Assembly: GCA_024704765.1 (NCBI GenBank)
Contig: JAKMXF010000126.1
Coordinates: forward strand, 3,238-16,658
From: Oopsacas minuta
Taxonomy: Eukaryota > Animalia > Porifera
Length of the DNA stretch: 13,421 bases
Direction: 5' to 3'
In this document: positions 1-13,421 of the stretch, one piece after another
Layout: each line of letters starts with the position of its first letter
How positions within the stretch are numbered: the first letter of the stretch is position 1
Program-made: the position numbers and the translations under genes
Notes under the pieces: model-generated
What the model was told of the DNA's origin: nothing
What the model saw: the letters and a program-made list of their open reading frames with translations, nothing else
Database searches by the model: none

Positions 1-128
1 TAGACTACACAATATATAGGAGCGGGAAAGAGTATACAATTTATGACAATATATTTGTGTTTTGAAATACTTTTGTCCACTTAGAGTATATACATCATTA
101 TTATTATTATATTTACTCGTATCTTTAG

Positions 129-233
129 AAGAGGCAAATTCGAGAGACATTATTGTATTGGTCACATATATTTTACCCCAAGTTTGGTGATTCGTTAGCA
201 ACCAAATACACTGAGAGTGTACTATACCCAGTC
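129..233 (+). CDS. Candidate upstream exon of the OTU-domain gene (KRQIRETLLYWSHIFYPKFGDSLATKYTESVLYPV)
   Basis: Preceded by pyrimidine-rich tctttAG (AG 127-128) and followed by GTAAGT (234-239). Of three frames only one is open across 129-233, and it joins in phase 0 to the OTU frame through a 112-bp GT-AG intron (234-345). Confidence 0.5.
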
Positions 234-345
234 GTAAGTTTCTATTAATGTTTATGAGTTTAAGACATATTTTCTCAACTCAAAATTATTTCATTGTTCT
301 TTTCTAAATCACATTGAATAGGTTTTATCTCTATCATATTTTTAG

Positions 346-1032
346 GCCATCGAATATCTCAATACTGTAGTTTGGGACAACATTGTCCCCAATAGCTCTT
401 CTATGCCACCTGCAATTCACGACAGTCCGCGAATATCTGTAATTAACGAAGCTTGGCAACGCCAAAAAAGTGAGATGTTAGAACTTAATTTTCATTCTGT
501 TAGTAAACAACCCTCACAGGTGAATCAAACTCTATCTGATTACAGACCGTGGGAAACTGCTAATATTGATAAAGACGGAAATTGTTTCTTTCGTTGTCTA
601 TCTCGCATAATTACTGGAAATCAAGACAGTCATAGCGAACTGAGAAAGCTAATAGCCCACTTCATCGCTAGCCAAGGAGCAAGCAAACTAGGATGGTATT
701 TGAAGCAGAGTGGGTATACACCATTTAGTTATTTTTAAAAGGAGAGTATGGTAAACATGGATGGAGTATGGGGAGGAGATGTAGAGATAATGGCAGCATC
801 CGCAATTCTCCAAGTAGACATATTTGTTGCCAACAACGAATATCGATGGGAAAGCCAAGAGAAAGTAAACCAAGTTATTTCTTGGAAATTAATGAGAGCC
901 AACGCACTGAATGAAGAAGTAATCTACGTAAAGAATTTTGATTTACATTTTGAGCCAGTAAGTTCACTGGTAAACAACCCTACAACAACCTATGGAGTCG
1001 TCGTTGACCAAATTACTCTTGTTTTCGATTAG
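346..1032 (+). pseudogene. OTU (ovarian tumour)-family cysteine protease/deubiquitinase domain, broken by one in-frame TAA at 736-738; probably the 3' exon of a Ginger-like transposon gene
   Basis: ORFs 403-738 and 748-1032 are in the same frame. Motifs: IDKDGNCFFRCLS (Asp/Cys), GVWGGDVEIMAASAILQVDIFV, and LHFEPV (His). The frame is open from a ttttAG acceptor at 344-345. Confidence 0.85.
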
Positions 1033-1080
1033 CCTTTCTATTTATGAGACTCGACTCCTACGTACAGTTGTGTAGGATTT

Positions 1081-1092
1081 GTGTGTGTGTGT
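1081..1092. repeat. (GT)6 microsatellite
   Basis: gtgtgtgtgtgt read directly, downstream of the OTU stop codon. Confidence 0.8.
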
Positions 1093-1209
1093 TTATTATA
1101 TATGAACTTGATTATCTATTAGTAAATTTATATTATTGATTCAAATAAGTTGGGGATGAAAATAACTGAAATAATGGAAAAAGAGGAGTTAGTAATATGA
1201 GTTATTATA

Positions 1210-1360
1210 ATATACATCTGGTAATAACTGAGATTATCATCAAGTCAAACTGAAACTAAATTAATCGCACAAATGTCTATGGATTCCAACTGCCTCAAAA
1301 TATTATAGACATTGAATATCCATGGTACTATAGTACAGTGCCTCAAAATATCATACAACA
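1210..1360 (+). mobile_element. Right terminal inverted repeat (151 bp, ends ...CATACAACA) of a Ginger-like DNA transposon that extends to the left
   Basis: Reverse complement of 10503-10671, with 5 mismatches plus an 18-bp duplication in that copy. TG...CA termini, each abutting GGAC. Confidence 0.75.
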
Positions 1361-1364
1361 GGAC
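1361..1364. repeat. 4-bp target-site duplication GGAC (partner at 10499-10502)
   Basis: CAACA|GGAC here and GGAC|TGTTG at 10499-10507. Collapsing the two copies restores a transposase reading frame. Confidence 0.8.
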
Positions 1365-2080
1365 TCTGCGCTTGCTCGCACCTGTTCTTCCGGAAATCTA
1401 TCTCATTCACGTGTTAAAGCAGCTAAGGATTCTCTAAACTTTTGTGAGATTTAGAGCATGCTTTGGACTCCAAAATGGACCATATAGAATAATTGAGAGG
1501 ATTCAAATCTGGCGAGCAAGGTGGCCATTCTTCCGAAGAAATATATCCAGGGCATTTCTCCTTGCACCATTTTTGGGTAGTCCTGACTTTGTGAGCTGGT
1601 GCTGAGTCCTGTTGAAAGGTCCATGGCCGACTTCCGAAATGTTTTCGGGCCCAGGGCTTTAAAACTGATTCGAGAATAGACTCGCAGTAAATAGACTGGT
1701 TGTTCTTAACACCTTGGGGGATAAATACTAGAGGCGCCCCTCCATCTGAGGTCACCCCGCCCAAACCATCACAGAGGCTGGTTTTTGTATCCGAGAGACA
1801 CGAAATGAAGATGAAGGTAAAGGCACTTTATTTCTAGTCAGTATTCTGTCATTTGCCTATTTATTTGCTTTCAACTAGATAGACCTTTTCATCAGAAAAC
1901 AAAATTTGATTCTGCAACCCACCAGTAAACCTCCCAAGCAGTGATTGACATCTATCTAGTCTTTTCTTTTATTTTTGACTGACAACAACTGTTTCTTCCG
2001 AAACTTACAAGAATTCATCGCTAGCTCGTTTCTCACCATTTAAGCTCATTGACTCACGCGGAACATTCATTTCTTTATTT
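1361..2080 (-). pseudogene. maT/DD37D-like ITm transposase, central body; frameshifted, with stops
   Basis: Manual translation: KEMNVPRESM..MVRNEL..RLDRC..ILFSDEK (D at 1891-1893)..NDRIL..PASVMVW/GVTSDG..FQQDSAPAH..WPPCSPDLNPLNYSIW (37 residues between D and the N that replaces the third D)..FPEEQVRASAES, cut at GGAC. Confidence 0.9.
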
Positions 2081-2348
2081 AATTGATTCAAAAACAGTTG
2101 TATGGTTCCGTATCAAAAGGCCTGTAGTGCGATATATGTAATTAATTCAAAAAAATTTGTATAGTTCAGCGTCAAAATGCCCATGTTACGAAATTTGTAA
2201 TTGATTAAAAACTTTCGTATGCATCAGGGTCAAATTCCTGTGGTGCTAAATTTGTAATTGATCAATTACTTTTGTATATTTCAAGGTCAAAATTCCTTTG
2301 GTGCGATATTTAGAATTGATTCAAAAAGATTTCTATAGTTCAGTATCA
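2081..2348. repeat. Degenerate minisatellite, 57-59-bp unit, ~4.6 copies
   Basis: Units start with AATT(G/A)AT at 2081, 2140, 2199, 2256 and 2314 and share tgtat, tcaaa and gtgc motifs. Confidence 0.85.
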
Positions 2349-2947
2349 TCTGAGATCAGGAATGAATTGAGACCATGGATCGCGTTCCTCTTAAGCAGTC
2401 CCTTGCTTCTCGATGTTCTTTTTGCCTTCACTAGGGTGGTGATGTGATGGAATCTCCTGCTCTTGAAAGAGCGCATATTCAAATCTTCTAACGATTCGTC
2501 CGATTGTTCTACGTCAAACTCTTAGCTCTTTGGCCATTCTGCTCATTGATTGGCGGGATTTCGGCGAATTCGTTGACGTAGTGCTTTTTTAAGCCTTTGA
2601 CTTGTTACAGACCGTGGAAGACCAGATCTTGGTTTATCAGTAATCCCGCCAGTCACTTCATATCGCTCAATAGTTCGAGTAATGAACTTACTTCTACTAT
2701 TAGGGAATTTCAGAAGATTGAAGATTTTTGACGCATTATTTCCTGCTTGAAAAAATTCAATGATTTTTTTATCTTTCTTGCTCCATGACCAATTATCGCT
2801 TCCAAAGGCTAAGAAAATATAAAATTTAAATGAAAGAGTGAAAAATATATATTATACCAAACATTGTGCTAAATGACAGATACAAATAATCAATGGAAAA
2901 ATTTTTGCTGGATTATAATTTTGTGGCAAAACATGTGCCCAACCCTA
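2345..2947 (-). mobile_element. Second maT-like ITm remnant: 5' end plus N-terminal HTH region (ATG at 2786), truncated at the first catalytic Asp
   Basis: MEQER/IIEFFQAG..TRTIERYEVTGGITDKPRSGLPRSVTSQRLKKALRQRIRRNP..MAKEL..DLNMRSFK..LLKRNAIHGLNSFLISDD. Candidate TIR TA|TAGGGTTGGGCACATG at ~2915-2947; no partner TIR seen. Confidence 0.8.
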
Positions 2948-3076
2948 TAAACTAATACAATGGTGAGTGATAAGTCTATAGACATAACTGAGGGTCTGTC
3001 ACATCTGGTGTCGAGGATGGTTCTCAAATAAGTTTGTAAACACTGCACGTACGTCATATAGAGAGTAACATACATC

Positions 3077-3430
3077 ACTGTATTTCCCTCTCTTTTCTCC
3101 ACTTCTAATCCAATATTCGTGATCTGGCAGTCTTTTTCTAGTAATTTATTCTCAAGAAGAGATTATTTGATTATTGAGAGGTTTTTCTGAATTAGTGATT
3201 GCTAATTTCCTCTCGAGATGAGAAATCTTGTTATCACATTCCTTATTTTTGTTCATTGAATCAATATTTTTTTCAACTAGATCAAAATTTTCAGATTCTA
3301 ATTTTTGAAACCGAGCTTCAATCCGTTCAAAGTAGCTCCGTATTCTTGACTTACCAATCCTGCAATGGAATTGGAGAAGTCTTTTAGTGAGGGTTGTAGA
3401 TGCTTGAATCTTAGAGTACAAAATCATCAA
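3077..3430 (-). pseudogene. Coiled-coil-like coding remnant of unknown origin
   Basis: ORF 3152-3430 (FERIEARFQKLESENFDLVEKN..KISHLERKL) appears to continue after a frameshift as LLENKLLEKDCQITNIGLEVEKREG. Heptad-like composition only; no family recognised. Confidence 0.3.
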
Positions 3431-3725
3431 ATCTTGACAGTAATACCATTGTATACACGAAACTATGGCATGAACCTCTTCTGGAGACGGATTATGTAAA
3501 CAAGTCGGGCATTATTAAATAGTTATATATTTCAGAAATGGATTGACGACAAGTGCATAAATTCATAAAAGCAAATTTTCTTTGAATGTGCCAAACTATT
3601 TGCTTAATAACCAATCATTTGGAGAAATGGATCCCATATTGAGGCTTCTAAAATCTTGCAACTGTATCTGCGTTCTAATGCTGAATGATTTAATGTTTCA
3701 AAGGAATTTTATACAAAAATACATA

Positions 3726-4219
3726 CAGGGTGTTTCACAATTGATGTCGTGTTATACAATATTACATAACTAATAGAATACTAGATACATTACTACAATT
3801 ATTTGCCAATATTTCAACCACTAAGTTCAATACGCTTATGGATTCGTTTTGGCATTCCATCCATCAATTGTCCAAAACCTCTGGTGAAATATTGGACCAT
3901 GCTGTTTTCAGTCGATTTTCCAACATTTTTATGTCTTTAAACTAACCTATTGAACCTAGATCATCTTTCAAAATCGACCATATTTTCTCAATGGGACTCA
4001 AGTATGGAGAGTTGGCTGGCCAGGTACCTTTCGCCCAAAAACTCTTTAGGGTGCTTCTCAACCAATTTTGTGTCATGTTTGCTTTGTAAGCTGGAGCGCC
4101 ATCTTGTTGAAATATCGCACGGGACATATTTTTTAACATTTTCCTCTCAACAACTGTGCCTCTTTCTCGCTTTCTATTCATTGTAGACATTAAAGTTTAC
4201 CCAATATCTCACTAACATN
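3726..4219 (-). mobile_element. Partial DD37E ITm element: 3' TIR plus C-terminal half of the transposase (3799-4219)
   Basis: TA|CAGGGTGTTTCACAATTGATG at 3724-3746. Translation VSEIL..RKMLKNMSRAIFQQDGAPAY..WPANSPYLSPIE (D-37-E)..AWSNISPE..GMPKRI..ELSG*NIGK*, homologous to the 8536-9878 element. Confidence 0.85.
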
Positions 4220-4346
4220 GAAGAATGCAATCTAAGTTGATAAATGGCCAAAATAGTTAAGAAAGCATATGTCTAACTAACTCTACATGTAAATGATAAT
4301 GTAAAGTATGATTGAAAGAAAATTGGTTCTTTAAGAATATATCGAA

Positions 4347-4373
4347 AATTCTCAATAATTATGTTACAGACTG
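4347..4373 (-). repeat. Solo 27-bp Tc1 TIR followed by TA, exact reverse complement of 12684-12710
   Basis: aattctcaataattatgttacagactg|TA versus TA|cagtctgtaacataattattgagaatt: 27/27 identical. Confidence 0.85.
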
Positions 4374-4610
4374 TATTTCAAAAATTCAACATATACAAGT
4401 AAGCTACTCTTCCTTGCGGACACGAAGCGTCCTCATTAGGCACGTTTCGGGCGCCTAGGTTACTCCTAATCAACCGATAATTTGTGTTATGTATTACCAA
4501 GTATCCTATGTATGCTTTGAAAGTCACTCTCTAAGTCGAATTTTCATGATTACCTCTGTAGCTGTTAAAAGTATATGAACTTTTTGAAATTTCTTTGCTT
4601 TATGTACATA

Positions 4611-5950
4611 CAGGGTGTCTCAAAATTATTGCCCTATTATAGTTCTAGCTATAAAATCGTAGAAAAGAGGAAGATATTAGCATCCATTTGGATATATATT
4701 TACCATCCAATTCGATGCAAGTTATAACTCTTTCCGGCATTCCATCTACTAACGCTTGCAAAAACCTTGGCTTTAGAGCTTCCCAAGCAGATTCGAGCTG
4801 CATTTCAGGTCCGAAATAGTTTTCGCCGGCTCCCTCTTGTTCAGTTCTTCCTGAAGATATCCCTATAGGTTTTCAATTGGATTTAAGTCAGGAGAGTTCC
4901 TGGCCATACAGATTTCTCCCAATAGTTTGGTAGGTTCTCCTTACACCAACCTTGGGTCATTTTGGACGTGTGAGCATGGGCACCGTCCTGCATAAAAACA
5001 ACCTTTGACATGTTTGGTACCATTTTCATCTCCAAAACTGATCCATTATTTTTAGTTCCGCGAAGGGTATCCAAACAAGACTTAGCCAGGATCTCATCTA
5101 ATAGTAGGCTGTATTCACTGTCTGTTTGGGAGGGATGAAGTGTAATTTCGATATAGCTCGAAAGCTCATCATCTCCCAAACCATGAATTTCGGGGGAAAT
5201 TTCACCGTTTCATGTGGCATGATATTCGAGGTATTCTTGGCCCATATCCTATCATTTTGGTGATTTGTTGGGTGAAATAGCTCGAAAGAAGATTCGTCAG
5301 AACAAAGGATGTTTCTCCAGTTAGCAACAGTCCAGTTTTGCTTTGCCAGAAAGATATCTAATCTGTTTTCTCTCTGTTTTACAGAGATTTTTGGCAGTTT
5401 GGGTTGCTTATATGGCCTATCCTAAATCTTTTGTTACAAAGCGATGAATGGTATCTTTTGAGATAGGAGCACACGTTCTGGTGATTTGTTTAGCAATACA
5501 TCACGTTAACTTGTGTCGTTTTCCAAGATATTTTGCGATAATGATTTTGGACCGCCTTTTTAGCTTTTTGGGCCCTCCACCCCACTTTCTATGTCGCAGA
5601 TCTTTTGAAGAATTATACCTTGTCAACCATCTCAGAACCGTTCGGATATCCTTTCCAAGTTTGTTTGCTATATAGTTTTGAGTAGAACCTGCGAGTAACA
5701 TACCGATAGCACGATTTCTAACCTGTAATATATTTCATTGACATCCATATTGGGCAATAAATCCAGTCAGGGCAAAGAGAACAAACTTTTTTTAAATACT
5801 TATAAAATAGCAGCTATAATATTTCGAGTTGGATAACAGTTATATTTCAATTCTTCAATCACCATAACTAATGTCTATGCTGTTTTAAGGTTCAGTTATA
5901 ACATATTTTGTGAAATAGTGCAACAGGGCAATAATTTTGAGACACCCCTG
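4611..5950 (-). mobile_element. Full-length (1340 bp) DD37E ITm transposon, inactivated
   Basis: TA|CAGGGTGTCTCAAAATTATTGCCCT ... AGGGCAATAATTTTGAGACACCCCTG|TA: 25-bp TIRs with one extra C at the right end, and a TA duplication. Confidence 0.95.
4684..5748 (-). pseudogene. DD37E transposase pseudogene with several frameshifts
   Basis: MDVNEI/LQVRNRAIGMLLAG..HTH..NILCSDESSFELFHP..FPPKFMVW..FMQDGAHAH..WPG/SPDLNPIEN..GMPERVITCIELDGKY. The catalytic D, D and E codons are all retained. Confidence 0.92.
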
Positions 5951-6509
5951 TAAATAACAACAAAAATTGATTATACAATGCTAAAAATCATATTCGGAAT
6001 CATTTGTCGGATCAAATTAGGTGCGAATTGTCGGTATTCCATGTTATCCTATATTTAGATACAATTTCTCGATGTCTCTCTGAATTGTATTATGACATCA
6101 GAAAATGTGTTTATACCATTATACCACAAATATTTTGAAACATAACAGTGTTGTATCTATACTAAGGTAAATAAGTCACTCTCATTTGAGTGACGCCCTG
6201 CAAAAATTTACTCAATCTATGCAATTTTATCCATTTAAGTATATTGTCATCTTTTAGTTATAAAATGTTAATTAATTATGATAATATCTTACCAATCACT
6301 CGCATTATGACCACTCAAAATCAAAATTCATTCAAATAATCTTACTCAGGAGGAGATGTCACTCATGGATCTCATTCATGATAATTCAAGTATACAAGTT
6401 AAAGATTTTATTTTCTACTATGTGCATATCTTCAAAAAAGCAATTGAAGTCGAATTGTCATAAATTTTATTAATCAAAAGCAAAGAATCAATCTAGTAGA
6501 ATTACCCAA

Positions 6510-6630
6510 AGCTAAGAATATTTTTAGAATTGCTTAATTCTAAGAATTATTCTTAGAATCCTTTAAGTATAGCCAAGTTAAGAATTCATAACGAAAACCA
6601 AGAATATTTCATTAATTCTTAGAATTTTAG
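6510..6630. repeat. AT-rich cluster of TAAGAA/TTCTTAGAA motifs, including a perfect 10-bp-stem hairpin (6537-6559)
   Basis: attctaagaa-tta-ttcttagaat, with further taagaa/ttagaa copies across the interval. Confidence 0.6.
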
Positions 6631-7706
6631 TTAATAAGACCCCAAATTGTCTGAAGATTTATGAACTCAGAAATTTTACCTTCCCCCAAAGTAGCTTGGG
6701 AGTTTGGGTATAGACCTACCCAAAAAAATAGATATACAAATCTTAAGCATCCAAGCCCCCCTAAAGTTTACTTAGCCCCTCCTAACTCTACTATCTGGCT
6801 ACGGTCCTGCTTCACCCGTGTGATCGATAAATTTTGCGGGACTCAAAGCACGAAAGATCAGGCTGTGAAGAAGAGCTACTAACGACCCGAAGCGGTAGTA
6901 TTATTGTATTTTCGGTTAAAACTTAAAACATATGCGTAATCACATATTATGTTAACAATAACTAAACATGGTATCTAATGAACCAGGGCAGGGGCAAGGG
7001 AATTTTCAAACAACAGCCTTCCCAGGAGTTGTTTAAGATAACTACTAATAAAGTTACGTTTTAAGGAGCGGCGTTTAGAACATGTGCCCCCAGTGGCACT
7101 AGACATCGTTACGCCACTGTATTCGAGGCTATCAAAAGATGGAATTTAGTCATAAATGAATAAATGTGATATGATTTTGAGGAATTATAAGAAAAAAATA
7201 GTTTAGGAGTAGGGATTTATTAACTTGTTCATGTACAAATAATCATTTATCCGTAGCAACAATTTGGGAAATTCCTCGAGAATTGAAAAATGTTTGTGAC
7301 GAAGGTAAAACCTGGTCGACGAACAATACAATGTGATGGATAATAGAGTAGTGATAACCCTGACAATTGGGATAATAGGATTCAGACAAGAGTAATATAA
7401 TAGAGGTTATAGAAATGTTCTATCATCATTGAAAAACAAGATCAGAATAGTTTTAGTTCAGTTTACATCATAAATTCACCCACAAAGATATAGAATAACT
7501 CTTACAGGAAATGCAAAAACAATATACTTAGAACCAATGATGTAGTTAGGGAGAAATAAGAAAGAAAGTGCACAAAATTGGAAAGTAAATTTAGAGTGTA
7601 AACTGGATGGTGAAAATTCTGGTAGTGTCTATAAGAAAGTAGAAGGTAGGGGAACACATTGAGACAACACCTCTTTGATGTTGGAAATAAGTATTTCACA
7701 TGGACG

Positions 7707-7872
7707 AATAAACAAACCCTCATAACGCCGATGTGAAATTAGAATAAACATTTCAATTATAAGAATGAACACAAACTCTCATGACACCGATGTGAAATTA
7801 GAGTAAACATTTCAATTGTAAGAATGAACACAAACTCTCACGACACTGATTTGAAATCAGAATAAACATTCA
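7707..7872. repeat. 59-bp tandem repeat, ~2.8 copies
   Basis: caaac(c/t)ctca..ga(t)gtgaaattaga.taaacatttcaatt.taagaatgaaca, recurring at 7713, 7772 and 7831. Confidence 0.9.
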
Positions 7873-8535
7873 AAGCATACAAAGGAACAAGCTCTAATGG
7901 AAGTTGGTTGAATATAGGTCATGATATTCAACTATTCGAGAAGTGGATCAGGTTTTATATCCTGAATTATACATATATTTGATGCTTATATAATGTGAAT
8001 GTCGTTCAATAAGTGGTCCAACTGCCATTCTTTGTGATTTCGACCATAGGTACATGTTAATGGAGACCAATTATTTAGATTTTATCAGTTACGCCCAACC
8101 CAAAGGAATATTTTGGAGACAATTGAAAGTGAGGAAATTCTTGATTTAGTTTATTGGTAAGTAAAATACAAAAGAATTGTACACAAGAATTGATACAAAA
8201 CATATATCACTTTCGAAGTGATTCGATTTCTACGGAGAGGAGGCGATTTCTCTCTACAAGAGAGGAGTTATTACTTAAGATCTCATCCATCCTCTTCTCT
8301 AATAAAAAGTTGGAGTGATTGACGTCAACAAGCCTCTGGGTGAGTATTAAAGTTTCATCAGTCATTTGTGTGATTTGAGCAAGCAATGCAGACGTTCCTC
8401 ACGTACTGCCTTCATTTCATTCATAATAAGGGCAACGGTAGAGTGAAAGGCCATAATTTCAGGAAAAAAAGAATAAAAAAAAATAATGAAATAAAAATGA
8501 AGAATTTGTTACAAGAATTATCCTATCACTATTTA

Positions 8536-9878
8536 CAGGGTGTCTCAAATTTATTGCGGTGTTGTATTAGATCAACTATAATGAAATAAGAACAGTGTAA
8601 TCGGATACAGCTTCAATTTACTAGTGCGAATATTATAAGCCAACCTTAGTAATTATAAATATGCATTATACCATAGATGGTTGTAGTTATTTTTGGAATT
8701 TTGAGTTTAGCTTAGAGTATTGGCGAATAATTAGCAGATAAATGTGCGTTTGGAAAAGTTGAAGTCCGTAACAGGGCCATTGGAATGCTGCTTAGTGAAA
8801 AACACAAAAGACCGTTTCTCTCTCTCTTAGAAAAGATGTTTCAACCATACAAAGATGGTGGTAGAAACATAAAGCACATAGAAGCCTACAACATAAGAGG
8901 GGTGCTGGACATCCGAAAAGGTTATCCAGAGTCTCAAAGATTGTTATCGCGAAATCATTGGGCAAGAGACACAAGTCGACAAGATCTATGGCTAAGAAAC
9001 TTACAAACATAGGAAATACTGTTTTAAAGGACACTGTATACCGGTATTTGTTCAAGGATTTAAAAGTTCAACCTTATAAAAGGCCAAAAACTCCCTTACT
9101 AACAGAATTTCATAAGAAAACAGACTAAGCTTCTGTATGGATAAGGTGAATTGGACAGTGGATGATTGGAAACGTGTACTCGGGTCAGGCGAATCTCCCT
9201 ATGAGTGATTTCACCCATCGAATCCACCGAACGATCGAATATGGGCAAGAGACGGTACACAAGTAACTCCCTGCCAAACTGTTAAATTTCCCGCAAAAGT
9301 GATGGTTTTGGGTATGGTGAGCTATCAAGCGCTTTCTACACTCCATGTATTGCCTCAAAAAGAGACAATTAATGCGAAATAATATGTAGACGAGATTCTA
9401 GAAGAGCCATGTATTCAAGCGTTGCGTAGAACCGATGAAAATGGAGGGATCCTAGGAAGGAAAATGATACCAGCCATGTCCAAAGCGATATTTATGCAGG
9501 ATGGAGCTCCGGCTCATACAGCTAGAAAGACTCAAGGCTGGTCCAGAGAGAACTTACCTGGGTTCTGGGAGAAACAGAAGTGGCCAGGCAACTCTCCGGT
9601 TCTCAACCCAATTGAGAATATTTGGTTAATCGTTCAAGATTTGATTAACAAGATCAAGCCTGCTGTCAACGTGAATGATTTGGACAAGATGCTAAAAAAT
9701 GCTTGGTCATCAATCGACCCTAATATTTTAGAAAGATTGTACTTAGGGATACCAATGCGCGTTCAGAAATTTATAGAATTGTCAGGGGAATATATTGGCA
9801 AATAGAACTTTATCAAAGTGTATTAATTCTAAGGTTATTGAGTATTTTACAATACCGCAATATTATTGAGACACCCTG
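8536..9878 (+). mobile_element. Full-length (1343 bp) DD37E ITm transposon, inactivated; same family as 4611-5950
   Basis: TA|CAGGGTGTCTCAAATTTATTGCGGTGTTGTA ... TACAATACCGCAATATTATTGAGACACCCTG|TA: 31-bp TIRs with 4 mismatches, and a TA duplication. Confidence 0.95.
8731..9805 (+). pseudogene. DD37E transposase pseudogene
   Basis: VEVRNRAIGMLL/..DVSTIQRWW*..KSLGKRHKSTR..WKRVLGSGES (first catalytic Asp codon is GGC at 9188-9190)..FPAKVMV..FMQDGAPAHT..WPGNSPVLNPIE (D-37-E)..ELSGEYIGK*. Start position is approximate. Confidence 0.92.
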
Positions 9879-10324
9879 TATACTCTATTAGCTGTATGAA
9901 CGCTTGAATTTGATTGGCTGTTCGTTCGAGAGTAAAGTGTGTAGTTTGAGTACTAGTGCTTACAATATTGTTTCTATGGAATATAAAACAACAAATAATG
10001 GACAAATTATGAATATGTGTTCACGATAACTAACAAATATCCAAAGATTCTTGGTAGACAAACAATTTTGAACAGGTCTAAAATTGTAGAAAATATTCAT
10101 TGGCACGCATTGTGCAAAGTAATTTTATTAAATCATGGATACCATTAGAGATTGATCATAAAGTCTCGATCAAAAGGTAATGCAGCTGGGAAATAGATAT
10201 ACAGTTTCGCAATAGGGGAGTTTCTATGTATTATATGACAAGAATATTCACATAGGAAAACGCTTACATCAGACTAGAAGTATATTTATTGCGAAGACAA
10301 TCAAATTAGACCACAATGAGTGTA

Positions 10325-10502
10325 CAAGTGGACCAATAAATACTGTTACTCGCGTTATTAGATTTATCAGTAAAACTATGATCCTTTCTTGCTCTAAATC
10401 AGTCTATGTAGTTATATGTACTCAAATTATCAAATTTTTGGTTATTGTTCGATTGTGCCACTTTTGGCTTTTACACAGCTCTTCAGATGTCCAACAAAGG
10501 AC
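10325..10502 (-). mobile_element. C-terminal tail (stop at 10442-10444) and probable 3' TIR of the maT-like element whose body lies at 1361-2080
   Basis: SFVGHLKSCVKAKSGTIEQ* reads in frame from GGAC. The candidate TIR TA|CAAGTGGACCAATAAATACTG starts at 10325; it has no partner in the window, so it is less certain. Confidence 0.8.
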
Positions 10503-10671
10503 TGTTGTATGATATTTTGAGGCACTATGATATTTTGACGCACTGTATTATAGTACCATGGATATTCAATATCTATAATATTTTGAGGCAGTTGGAATCC
10601 ATAGAAGTTTGTGCGATTAATTTAGTTTCAGTTTGACTTGATGATAATCTCAGTTATTACCAGATATATAT
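10503..10671 (+). mobile_element. Left terminal inverted repeat (starts TGTTGTATG) of the Ginger-like element, with an internal 18-bp tandem duplication
   Basis: Inverted copy of 1210-1360. The duplication is atgatattttgaggcact (10509-10526) / atgatattttgacgcact (10527-10544). Confidence 0.75.
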
Positions 10672-10719
10672 GAAGGTCTTTAGTTTTCATCTAAAATTTA
10701 ACCTTTTTTTCAAAATGTA

Positions 10720-11009
10720 CAGGGTGTAACGAAAGTGTTGATACCTTTTATTATCCTATGAAAATCTTAAATATTAATGAACCATACAGAGTTTGTTTCC
10801 TATACTTTTCTTAAATATAGTTATAGTACTTTAGATTATTTCTGATTACATTAATTACTTATATTATTCAAATATTTGAATTTNTCTCGCATTAATAAAT
10901 GTTTAAAATTAAATGGAGATTACATAGGAAAGTAAATAGCACACCTTTCTAGTTCGCATTATTGAAATATGCATGGTATAAAATGGGACATCAATTTCTT
11001 AACACCCTG
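10720..11009. mobile_element. 290-bp non-autonomous Tc1/mariner-type element (MITE)
   Basis: TA|CAGGGTGTAACGAAAGTGTTG ... CATCAATTTCTTAACACCCTG|TA with an AT-rich non-coding interior. The ends resemble the TIR at 3726. One ambiguous base (n) at 10884. Confidence 0.85.
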
Positions 11010-11011
11010 TA

Positions 11012-11378
11012 CATCAGGCTATTCTTTTGGAAACATGGAGGTCGGTGAGTGCTGGAACTCGGACAGCCCGCTTGTTGACAAAGTTTTGCCTCTTTACCTG
11101 AGCATGAAGAGTACTTATGGATACAGGAGAGCTCAATCTCGGTGGTATAGAGCGTAGAGAGGTCCTCGGATTGCTTTGATACAAAGCAGCTATCCTTCTT
11201 TTGTCATTTCCCTTGATTTTTGAAGGCTTTTTTCATCTTTCATCAGATTCAAGACACGATATACAGTCTGCTTAGGTATACTTGTTCGCTGGCAGATATC
11301 CACGTCTTTGGTAACTCCTGCATTTTATAGTGTCTCTATTTTATTTCTACGCTGTTATTGGGTAGAATGCTTGTACAT
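11012..11378 (-). pseudogene. N-terminal (paired-like HTH) fragment of a Tc1/mariner transposase, cut by the MITE
   Basis: MYKHSTQ*QRRNKIETL*NAGVTKDVDICQRTSIPKQTVYRVL..SNPRTSLRSI..VSISTLHAQVKRQNFVNKRAVRVPALTDLHVSKRIA*C, in a single frame with three stops. Confidence 0.75.
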
Positions 11379-11633
11379 TGTACAAAATATGCGGTCTTAG
11401 ATGACGGAAATGGGGTCTCGAAATATATATAGGTATATTTGCTTGGGAATCCCAATATTTCAGCCAAACAAACGAAATATTATGTGAAATAGCGAATCTA
11501 TTGGTTTTCTAACAATTATAGGAAGTGTATATATACAATAAGGTAAATGGTTGTATAATATGTGCATAACCTGATATCCTTCATGGTGATTCAAGTTAAT
11601 CATGAGAAGTCCCAATAATTTCCGAACATACTC

Positions 11634-11808
11634 TATCTGGTGTGTGCTATCCTGGGACTCCCGTGCTTTCCTCTTCATGCCTGCCTCCGCTTCACAACAG
11701 TCCGCTGCCTGCTCGTCAGGTCCATGGGAGTGCTCATTCGTGCGCTTGACTATCACCATCCCTTTGATGTGAACTCTAGCTTTTGCAGACTCTTTGCTCA
11801 CACAACCA
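11634..11808 (-). pseudogene. FLYWCH-type zinc-finger fragment, probably from a Mutator-like (MULE) transposase
   Basis: Removing one extra A gives WLCEQRVCKARVHIKGMVIVKRTNEHSH (W-x-C-x4-C..H-x-H), followed by EAEAGMKRKARESQDSTHQI. No DDE domain follows. Confidence 0.75.
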
Positions 11809-11820
11809 ATCCGCCACATT

Positions 11821-11870
11821 TCTTTCTCTACTCACTCCACTCCTCTCCTCCCCTCCCCTCTATCCTCTCC
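11821..11870. repeat. CT-rich low-complexity tract
   Basis: tctttctctactcactccactcctctcctcccctcccctctatcctctcc. Confidence 0.7.
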
Positions 11871-11949
11871 ATTGAGGTGCAGCTACCATGGAAGAAGAAC
11901 AGTGGTTATGATACGGTAGCTGCACTTCTCTTGATCTTTCTCCTACAAC

Positions 11950-12050
11950 TCTCTTATATATATATTATTTTAATTCATCATAATTATTTATTCTCTTATT
12001 TTTATTATATTTATCATTATTTTTATCATTATTTTTATTCAATTATATTT
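11950..12050. repeat. TTA/TAT-rich low-complexity tract
   Basis: Repeated ttattttta/tcattattttta motifs. Confidence 0.7.
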
Positions 12051-12683
12051 GTAGACACATGTATATTAGACATTAAATATAGTTAATTTATGACTTAACT
12101 TTATTCATTTGTCTTGTTACGAGTAGAAACCTAAAGGGTTAATTTCCAGGCGCGAACGGGGTGATTCAAACTTTACGTAACACTTAATGCCTGAATTGGA
12201 TATCCTACTGGCAAGTATTCTTTTGTCCCCATTTTGTAAGATCATTGTGAAGGGGTATGAAGTTCATTTAATCATGGCCTATGTGATATCATGATTATAA
12301 GTTAAATGAATAAAATATCTGTTACAGATATCATTCCGATCTATGTCAGCAAAGCCAATATTTAAAAGTGGATGGCTAGTTTACTTAACGGAAACAGAAC
12401 CCATCCAGAGATTAAATTATCACCTATATTTACTGTATAAAGGTGTTGGCCAGATTAACTGGTGGCTCTATTAAGCGGAGTCCACCTTATTATTAAAGGA
12501 ATTTAAGTAGCAATTTTGTGTTAGGCCAGCTCAATGTGGGGAAATATAAGAAAGATTTTCCATAGAAGAACAGCTTCAAATTGTATTATGATAAATCCAG
12601 ATTGATTTTATTTATAGTTTTCCAAAGGTATGGATAAATTCTTTGATCACAGATCGTGCAATCCATACTTTACTACTTGTATA

Positions 12684-13421
12684 CAGTCTGTAACATAATT
12701 ATTGAGAATTATTCAATGAACTAGATCAGAATCAATTTTCCTGAAATGAGTACTAATTCATGTGATTTTGCTTCAAAAAACATCACTAGTTAATAATTTA
12801 TAGCAAAACCACCAGATTCTATTACCATCTGGCATCTGTGTGGCATCGAATCACAATATGGCTTTAGAAATTCAGGGGTTAGCTTTTCCCATACAATTTC
12901 AAGCTTCTTCCTTAGCTCTGAAATTGTCCTAGGAGCCACTTTATAAGTTCTCGTTTTACCCAACTGAAAACATTTTCTATTGGGTTGATATTGGGGCTCT
13001 GAGAAGGCCAAGGAAGATGATTCAGGATGTTCGGAACAAGATATGTCTTGACAAGTTTAGAGGTGTGCTTTGGGTAGTTGTCCATGACAAGACTCATTCA
13101 TTTTGGTGGAAGATTTCTGCCTGAGTTAACAAATGCCCTTCTAGAAAATCAACAAACATTTGACTGTTCATGTTTTCGGTGAAAATAGATAGAGGAAATG
13201 TTCCCATTGAACTAAACCCCGCCCAAACATTGATCTTTGGAGAATGCTTAGTTGTCGGGACAATTCGTTTTTGGCCTGATTTTGTCCACATTTTGATCCT
13301 TCCTCGAGCAGGCCAAATCGAAATTTCATCAATAAATACTGTTTGGTACCACGCTTTCTTGGGATATTTGTACTTCTTAGCCCATTGCAGCCTTGCAAGT
13401 CGATTTTTCTCGCTAATCATT
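12684..13421 (-). mobile_element. Tc1 (DD34E) transposon, 3' portion; transposase pseudogene 12790 to beyond 13421
   Basis: TA|CAGTCTGTAACATAATTATTGAG TIR. Translation RLQWAKKY..VFIDE..KHSPKINVWAGFS..*SLVMDNYPKH..WPSQSPNINPIE (D-34-E)../..DSMPHRCQMVIESGGFAINY*. Confidence 0.92.

Follow-up and report, generated by a model that had tools for sequence, protein, structure and literature searches.

On scaffold C126 of the glass sponge Oopsacas minuta, a Ginger1-type transposon (X) sits within a copy of a transposon classed on its sequence as maT-type (M). The two halves of M are deposited in permuted order, and we consider it very probable that this order is an assembly artefact, in which the four blocks of the scaffold were strung together in reverse with their orientation kept. 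The stretch analysed here (the window, 13,421 nucleotides) begins immediately past a run of 1263 Ns and finishes at the scaffold end. Its features around the insertion are the following, with the strand given where one applies.

1-86: terminal part of K, a foldback-like repeat nested in X; block start directly after the 1263-N gap
87-1360, plus strand: right arm of X, with an OTU protease remnant (403-1032) and the right inverted repeat (1210-1360), ending in CAACA
1361-1364: first copy of the GGAC target-site duplication, adjoining the X right end
1361-2077, minus strand: M body, maT-type (DD37D) Tc1/mariner, with its 5' end cut short at 2077, where a 58-bp tandem array adjoins
2078-2348: 58-bp tandem array, adjoining M
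10323-10502, minus strand: M tail (C-terminal codons, stop codon and 3' terminal repeat), ending in GGAC
10499-10502: second copy of the GGAC duplication, at the end of the M tail and adjoining the X left end
10503-10719, plus strand: left end of X, with the TGTTG terminus and a left inverted repeat containing an 18-bp tandem duplication
10715-10883: H, a Tc1-like element of 1.3 kb nested in X, of which the first 169 bp are present; homology ends at an N

Both junctions are real as read. X ends on the right at 1360, with GGAC next to it, and on the left begins with TGTTG at 10503, directly after GGAC; the order of body and tail is indeed permuted in the deposited sequence. A sequence-only reading of this DNA had proposed that X inserted into a maT element, duplicated four base pairs and split a reading frame that can be restored; all of this is upheld. 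The minus-strand C-terminus was also read correctly, as ...QVRASAES followed by FVGHLKSCVKAKSGTIEQ*. An uninterrupted copy of M on contig C305 carries a single open frame, ...QVRASVESFVGRLKSCIKAKCGIFEQ, with the same C-terminal reading as that restored across GGAC. When the two M flanks are fused over one GGAC (76 nt), they align end to end with six other M copies, five of them gaplessly, a match far beyond chance.

The assignment of M to the maT (DD37D) group draws on the length of the full element (1328 bp), its terminal inverted repeats and the spacing of its catalytic residues. In the C305 copy, 37 residues separate the second and third catalytic aspartates, counted from the D of FQLDSAP to the D of NPLD, and the same stretch occurs in the window copy. 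The M body is 89-92% identical to full copies; its DDE_3 match (E 8.7e-5) is below the Pfam cut-off. The window copy differs from a standard maT element in that X interrupts it and its 5' end is lost against the 58-bp array; C98 has the same M-to-array breakpoint.

Element X resembles the Ginger1 family. Ginger1 transposons have inverted repeats of ~40-270 bp, TGTNR termini and a 4-bp target duplication, and encode a Gypsy-like integrase with an H2C2 zinc finger, a DDE core and a GPY/F motif, together with a C-terminal OTU or Ulp1 protease (Bao, Kapitonov and Jurka 2010, PMC2836005). X is ~4 kb long and lacks LTRs; it has TGTTG termini, inverted repeats of ~150 bp, a 4-bp target duplication and a transposase remnant that combines an H2C2 zinc finger and a candidate DDE core with an OTU protease at its C-terminus. 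Inverted repeats of 151 bp had been reported on the outer sides of both junctions. They are present and 96% complementary over 146 nt, but only the right one (1210-1360) has this length; the left one (10503-10671) contains a tandem duplication of 18 bp and so measures 169 bp. Elsewhere in the genome, four complete X copies share the same termini and are flanked by 4-bp duplications (GCTC, GGCC, GGTC and GACC), and the ends seen in the window are therefore the true termini of X. The right arm is 95-96% identical to the X copies on C8 and C166.

The coding evidence comes from decayed copies. In the C8 copy, the OTU protease matches Pfam OTU (E 1.7e-8); in the window, split remnants of the domain lie at 403-738 and 748-1032. 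With the pieces of the decayed transposase searched singly, Integrase_H2C2 scores above its cut-off (E 2.6e-10) and rve gives a weak match (E 0.092) to a piece of 43 aa. By eye, the motifs D, D and E can be made out over three frames of the C8 copy, as can a TPFKIMWGRE stretch following the DDE region, a candidate GPY/F motif. The examined copies of X thus differ from the family description in being decayed, with the rve core and the GPY/F motif visible only weakly or by eye. A further difference lies in target choice: all five X duplications (the four above and GGAC) follow the pattern GNNC, whereas Hydra Ginger1 targets CCGG or CCGT (PMC2836005). That preference appears in the 2010 paper as a lineage trait, which does not clearly define the family.

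Why, then, is M permuted? Scaffold C126 (16.7 kb) consists of four blocks parted only by N: block 0 (C126:1-1974), block 1 (window 1-4218), block 2 (4220-10883) and block 3 (10885-13421). The 1263-N run separates the first two, and single Ns at 4219 and 10884 mark the other joins. These single Ns had been overlooked in the sequence-only reading, as had the placing of the window between the 1263-N run and the scaffold end. The N at 4219 falls between the two GGAC junctions, and both single Ns coincide exactly with homology breakpoints. The body and the tail of M lie on different blocks that are joined by N only. The features that bear on the joins are these.

3723-4218, minus strand: E (Tc1-like), positions 1-495, cut off by the N
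4219: single N, block join between E (to 4218) and G (from 4220)
4220-4376, minus strand: last ~157 bp of G (Tc1-like), about positions 1161-1317, 97% identical to the C199 copy
4377-4610 and 5951-6040: right part of the repeat TE-b, interrupted by a nested Tc1-like element
4611-5950: the Tc1-like element nested in TE-b, separating its right pieces
10884: single N, block join; the H match ends at 10883
11633-12683: left part of TE-b, up to the TA into which G inserted
12680-13421, minus strand: G, positions 1-744, cut by the scaffold end and continuing at 4220
C126:1-394: E, positions 944-1338, in the first 394 bases of the scaffold

Three independent elements are split in the same way: M (by X), G (within TE-b) and E all break off where a block ends and resume where the block deposited before it begins, from block 2 to 1 for M, 3 to 2 for G and 1 to 0 for E. 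The two halves of one TE-b copy flank G, with a TA duplication, and four uninterrupted TE-b copies elsewhere read straight over the G site, the right pieces directly following the sequence of 11633-12683. The pieces of E are collinear in all four full-length copies, with 448 bp missing between them. H is 99% identical to its copy on C317 through 10883 and unrelated beyond it. The three split elements indicate that the blocks of C126 stand in reverse order. Reversing the block order with orientation kept restores all three, while a tandem repeat or a circle of the scaffold fails to do so, and an all-against-all comparison of block ends with block starts yielded only these reverse-neighbour links plus one forward link. 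Three explanations of the permutation had been offered beforehand; misassembly is the one supported, by the split elements and the Ns, while neither tandem duplication nor circle integration is needed or reproduces the adjacencies for which the split elements call.

X, a cut-and-paste Ginger1-type transposon, integrated in the 3' part of M, where the 4-bp target GGAC was duplicated. The true order would be window 10885-13421, then 4220-10883, then 1-4218, then C126:1-1974 or, equivalently, the deposited block order would be right and every block flipped. So arranged, the locus would read M tail-GGAC-X left end ... X right end-GGAC-M body. Directly observed are both junctions, the empty sites, the splitting of three elements and the position of the Ns on the breakpoints; the pattern that these form points to wrongly oriented mate-pair links as the most likely cause. 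That is, such links would have been taken in the wrong orientation at SSPACE scaffolding, and GapFiller would then have extended the block ends until a single N was left. The published assembly was built with SPAdes, Nextera mate pairs, SSPACE and GapFiller (PMC10280926). C126 also resembles the errors expected of SSPACE-type scaffolders with a mis-set mate-pair orientation, where a single n denotes an unresolved join: its blocks are reversed with their orientation kept, single Ns stand at the joins and the block ends fall within high-copy repeats.

Two observations speak against the reversal. The scaffold gaps (1263, 1 and 1 N) differ from the lengths missing in the corrected order (448 bp, several kb and about 415 bp). 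In addition, the one forward link runs across the 1263 Ns, from an element F that closes block 0 (C126:1974) to the K end with which the window opens (position 1); F and K lie in the same relative orientation at two other loci, 1149 and 1364 bp apart. We considered F nested in K as support for the join of blocks 0 and 1 and rejected it, as the sequence to the left of this F is not K. The K in the window continues into X rather than F, and the same 60-99 nt of the K end make the inverted termini of a ~0.9-kb element on C57 and C111. We take the F-K link to be fortuitous, or else to suggest that an earlier step had already joined blocks 0 and 1 correctly. In the latter case, the order would be 3, 2, then 0-1, and M and X would still be unpermuted.

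Among the alternatives, a real tandem segmental duplication after the insertion of X is very unlikely. Its unit would be X plus about 9.1 kb, with the window running from inside one X to inside the next. It fits the deposited order of both junctions, and unequal exchange is plausible in a region made up wholly of repeats. Yet the scaffold ends share no direct repeat, which would place the unit above 16.6 kb, and the two adjacencies that a tandem array needs are present only across Ns. Moreover, G in TE-b needs the scaffold end joined to 4220, and E needs 4218 joined to the scaffold start; a tandem array gives neither. The M tail plus TGTTG that the duplication predicts upstream is absent from the 1974 readable bases before the gap (C126:1-1974), which hold E and F and neither M nor X. 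Downstream, where CAACA-GGAC-body was expected again, the scaffold ends with the window. A search for a second locus carrying the 9.1-kb interval in normal order found none that is near-identical; every piece is a repeat, with 75-93% identity elsewhere.

Less probable still is that the reverse-ordered blocks are real, that is, that this glass-sponge genome has locally scrambled or duplicated segments with unsequenceable junctions, of which the X-M locus would be one. We give hardly any credence to a circular DNA with M as the target of X, or a circle integrated via X, of which the scaffold would be the linearised form or the cointegrate. Closing 1361-10502 on one GGAC does restore M, but the objections to a tandem duplication apply here too, and the closures differ: 13421-4220 for G and TE-b, 10502-1361 for M and 4218-C126:1 for E are achieved together only by reversing the block order. 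Equally far-fetched are two M-with-X composites side by side, of which the window would hold the right half of the first and the left half of the second: the M transposase could in principle move a composite, and C98 carries a duplicate of the fusion of M with the 58-bp array, but among the scored matches no other M copy carries X and none crosses either junction, and the split G/TE-b, the split E and the Ns at the breakpoints would be left unexplained.

The reversal of blocks that we favour for C126 is not confined to it. Scaffold C17 shows the same artefact: in its PARP gene, all on the minus strand, WGR (11.3 kb) comes before PARP_reg (16.7 kb) and the catalytic domain (18.6-20.5 kb) along the scaffold, which is the reversed domain order, while the PARP paralogues on C22 and C311 have the normal one. 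Split elements were also sought across the Ns of C98 and C108, and among the loci compared there were no informative links. C98 was dropped as a parallel case, as homology stops short of its N and its M tail is truncated.

Biologically, the locus shows a routine nested insertion, with a Ginger1-type element lying in a maT element amid a heap of transposon remains. The main value of the case is as a data-quality warning on the Oopsacas minuta assembly: the blocks of a multi-block scaffold can be ordered backwards. This scrambles genes that span the joins (e.g. the PARP gene on C17) and can yield false rearrangements, false gene fragments or false absences. Claims about Oopsacas minuta that depend on order across an N need rechecking.

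Re-reading of the sequence bears out the junctions from which a split transposase had been proposed: an inverted-repeat arm closes with CAACA at 1360, directly before a GGAC, and a second GGAC (10499-10502) directly precedes TGTTG. These termini belong to X, a transposon whose inverted-repeat arms (1210-1360 and 10503-10671) are 96% complementary. The genome searched comprised 61.46 Mb in 365 sequences, with the window corresponding to bases 3238-16658 of its scaffold, C126. Four complete X copies elsewhere carry TGTTG...CAACA termini and 4-bp duplications (GCTC, GGCC, GGTC, GACC), so the termini in the window are genuine ends of the transposon, with GGAC as an ordinary target duplication. Both X flanks derive from one Tc1/mariner family (M, 1328 bp). 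Joined over a single GGAC, as had been suggested, they give 76 nt that match six uninterrupted M copies end to end. The uninterrupted copy on scaffold C305 has a single-frame reading, ...QVRASVESFVGRLKSCIKAKCGIFEQ, and the DD37D spacing of maT elements.

Domains of the X transposase were searched piece by piece, each piece alone. The 3985-bp copy on C8 encodes an Integrase_H2C2 domain (E 2.6e-10), an OTU protease (E 1.7e-8) and a weak rve core (E 0.092), the D, D and E motifs of which were located by eye in shifted frames. X resembles Ginger1 in its TGTNR termini, inverted repeats of ~150 bp, 4-bp duplication and OTU protease, and taken together with the H2C2 domain and the weak rve core these sequence features appear to match the element as defined (PMC2836005). 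The target duplications differ, being GNNC in 5/5 X copies (GGAC of the window included), whereas CCGG or CCGT is reported for Ginger1 of Hydra (PMC2836005). The X family (C8, C363, C314, C354) ranges from MITE-like derivatives of ~0.5 kb up to a 4-kb copy, and the left inverted repeat of the window copy (its right-hand arm here) holds an 18-bp tandem duplication, at 10521-10538, that is not in the other copies examined. Relatives of the X integrase piece are encoded at >100 genomic places, many with open frames of ~160 aa, and integrase-type elements are thus abundant in the genome.

Other repeats surround these elements. M lies inside a 58-bp tandem array (2078-2348 and ~10029-10322), which is part of a larger repeat (7120-8535 plus 9879-10028) that runs unbroken into the array on C108. 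The breakpoint at 2077 between truncated M and the array is common to C98, which indicates that the M-array composite was copied. A SINE- or MITE-like repeat of ~310 bp (6810-7120; many copies, 89-93% identity) sits as an insertion between two other repeat families.

Scaffold C126 is 16,658 bp long in total and has a run of N at bases 1975-3237; the window extends from the base after this run to the scaffold end. Within it, positions 4219 and 10884 are single Ns, both exactly at homology breakpoints. The Tc1-like element E is homologous to four full copies up to 4218, and a different Tc1-like element, G, matches from 4220; a third, H, is 99% identical to its C317 copy up to 10883, with no match past that base. 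Given this coincidence of Ns and breakpoints, C126 consists of four blocks held together by Ns alone.

Blocks of C126 in deposited order
Block 0: C126 bases 1-1974, bounded by the N run
Block 1: window 1-4218, ending at a single N
Block 2: window 4220-10883, with a single N on either side
Block 3: window 10885-13421, running to the scaffold end

In all three split elements, the sequence at the end of one block picks up again at the beginning of the preceding block. Positions 1-744 of G (1317 bp) close block 3 and its last ~157 bp (to position 1317) open block 2; the pieces flanking G (11633-12683 on one side, 4377-4610 and 5951-6040 on the other) form one continuous repeat at four other loci, unbroken at the TA that G occupies on C126. 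For M and X, the end of block 2 reads M tail-GGAC-X left end, and X right end-GGAC-M body lies in block 1. Positions 1-495 of E (1338 bp) close block 1 and positions 944-1338 open block 0, pieces that are collinear in 4/4 full copies examined. Comparing block ends with block starts, all against all, returned exactly the reverse-neighbour links for E and G. The block order 3-2-1-0, with orientation unchanged, makes G, M/X and E all whole, and the reordered blocks read tail-GGAC-X-GGAC-body. The permuted arrangement is not a real feature.

The 1263 N separate two repeats: F, a multicopy element of ~2.2 kb with inverted repeats of 370 bp, which closes block 0 (C126 bases 537-1974), and one end of the foldback-like K (~0.9 kb; window 1-86). 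F and K occur in the same relative orientation at two other loci, 1149 and 1364 bp apart; on C111 and C57 they are nested in each other, with a spacing that resembles the gap. The left flank of F on C126 is not K, and K here is followed by X, not F. We regard the resemblance in spacing as coincidental. A correct join of blocks 0 and 1 would give the order 3, 2, 0-1, which likewise leaves M with X unpermuted. A pair of composite M-with-X copies is unlikely to lie behind the two halves, because no X was found inside other M copies among the scored matches. A tandem array of the scaffold (a real duplication) or a circle does not hold: either would link block 3 to 0, not 3-2, 2-1 or 1-0, the deposited joins 0-1, 1-2 and 2-3 have no sequence spanning them, and, against both, no direct repeat common to the two C126 ends was found. 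The sequence-only reading had offered tandem duplication, a circle or cointegrate, and misassembly, and is only partly supported because misassembly is the sole alternative that holds.

The assembly was built with SPAdes on Illumina and PacBio reads, along with Nextera mate pairs, SSPACE, Pilon and GapFiller (PMC10280926), and comprises 365 scaffolds, ~61 Mb and 36% G+C (PMC10280926). The same block reversal is seen in a PARP gene on C17 (11326-20495), wholly on the minus strand, with WGR at 11.3 kb, PARP_reg at 16.7 kb and the catalytic region at 18.6-20.5 kb. Here the universal order, WGR-regulatory-catalytic, is inverted, and inside the catalytic block the order is normal; the paralogues on C22 and C311 follow the canonical order in full. 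When mate pairs are read in the wrong orientation, adjacent contigs end up in reverse order, unflipped, and SSPACE inserts a single n where an expected overlap is missing. From the fit of this pattern, a mate-pair orientation error during SSPACE scaffolding is the likely cause of the block reversal. The underlying biology is an ordinary Ginger1-type insertion into a maT-type element.
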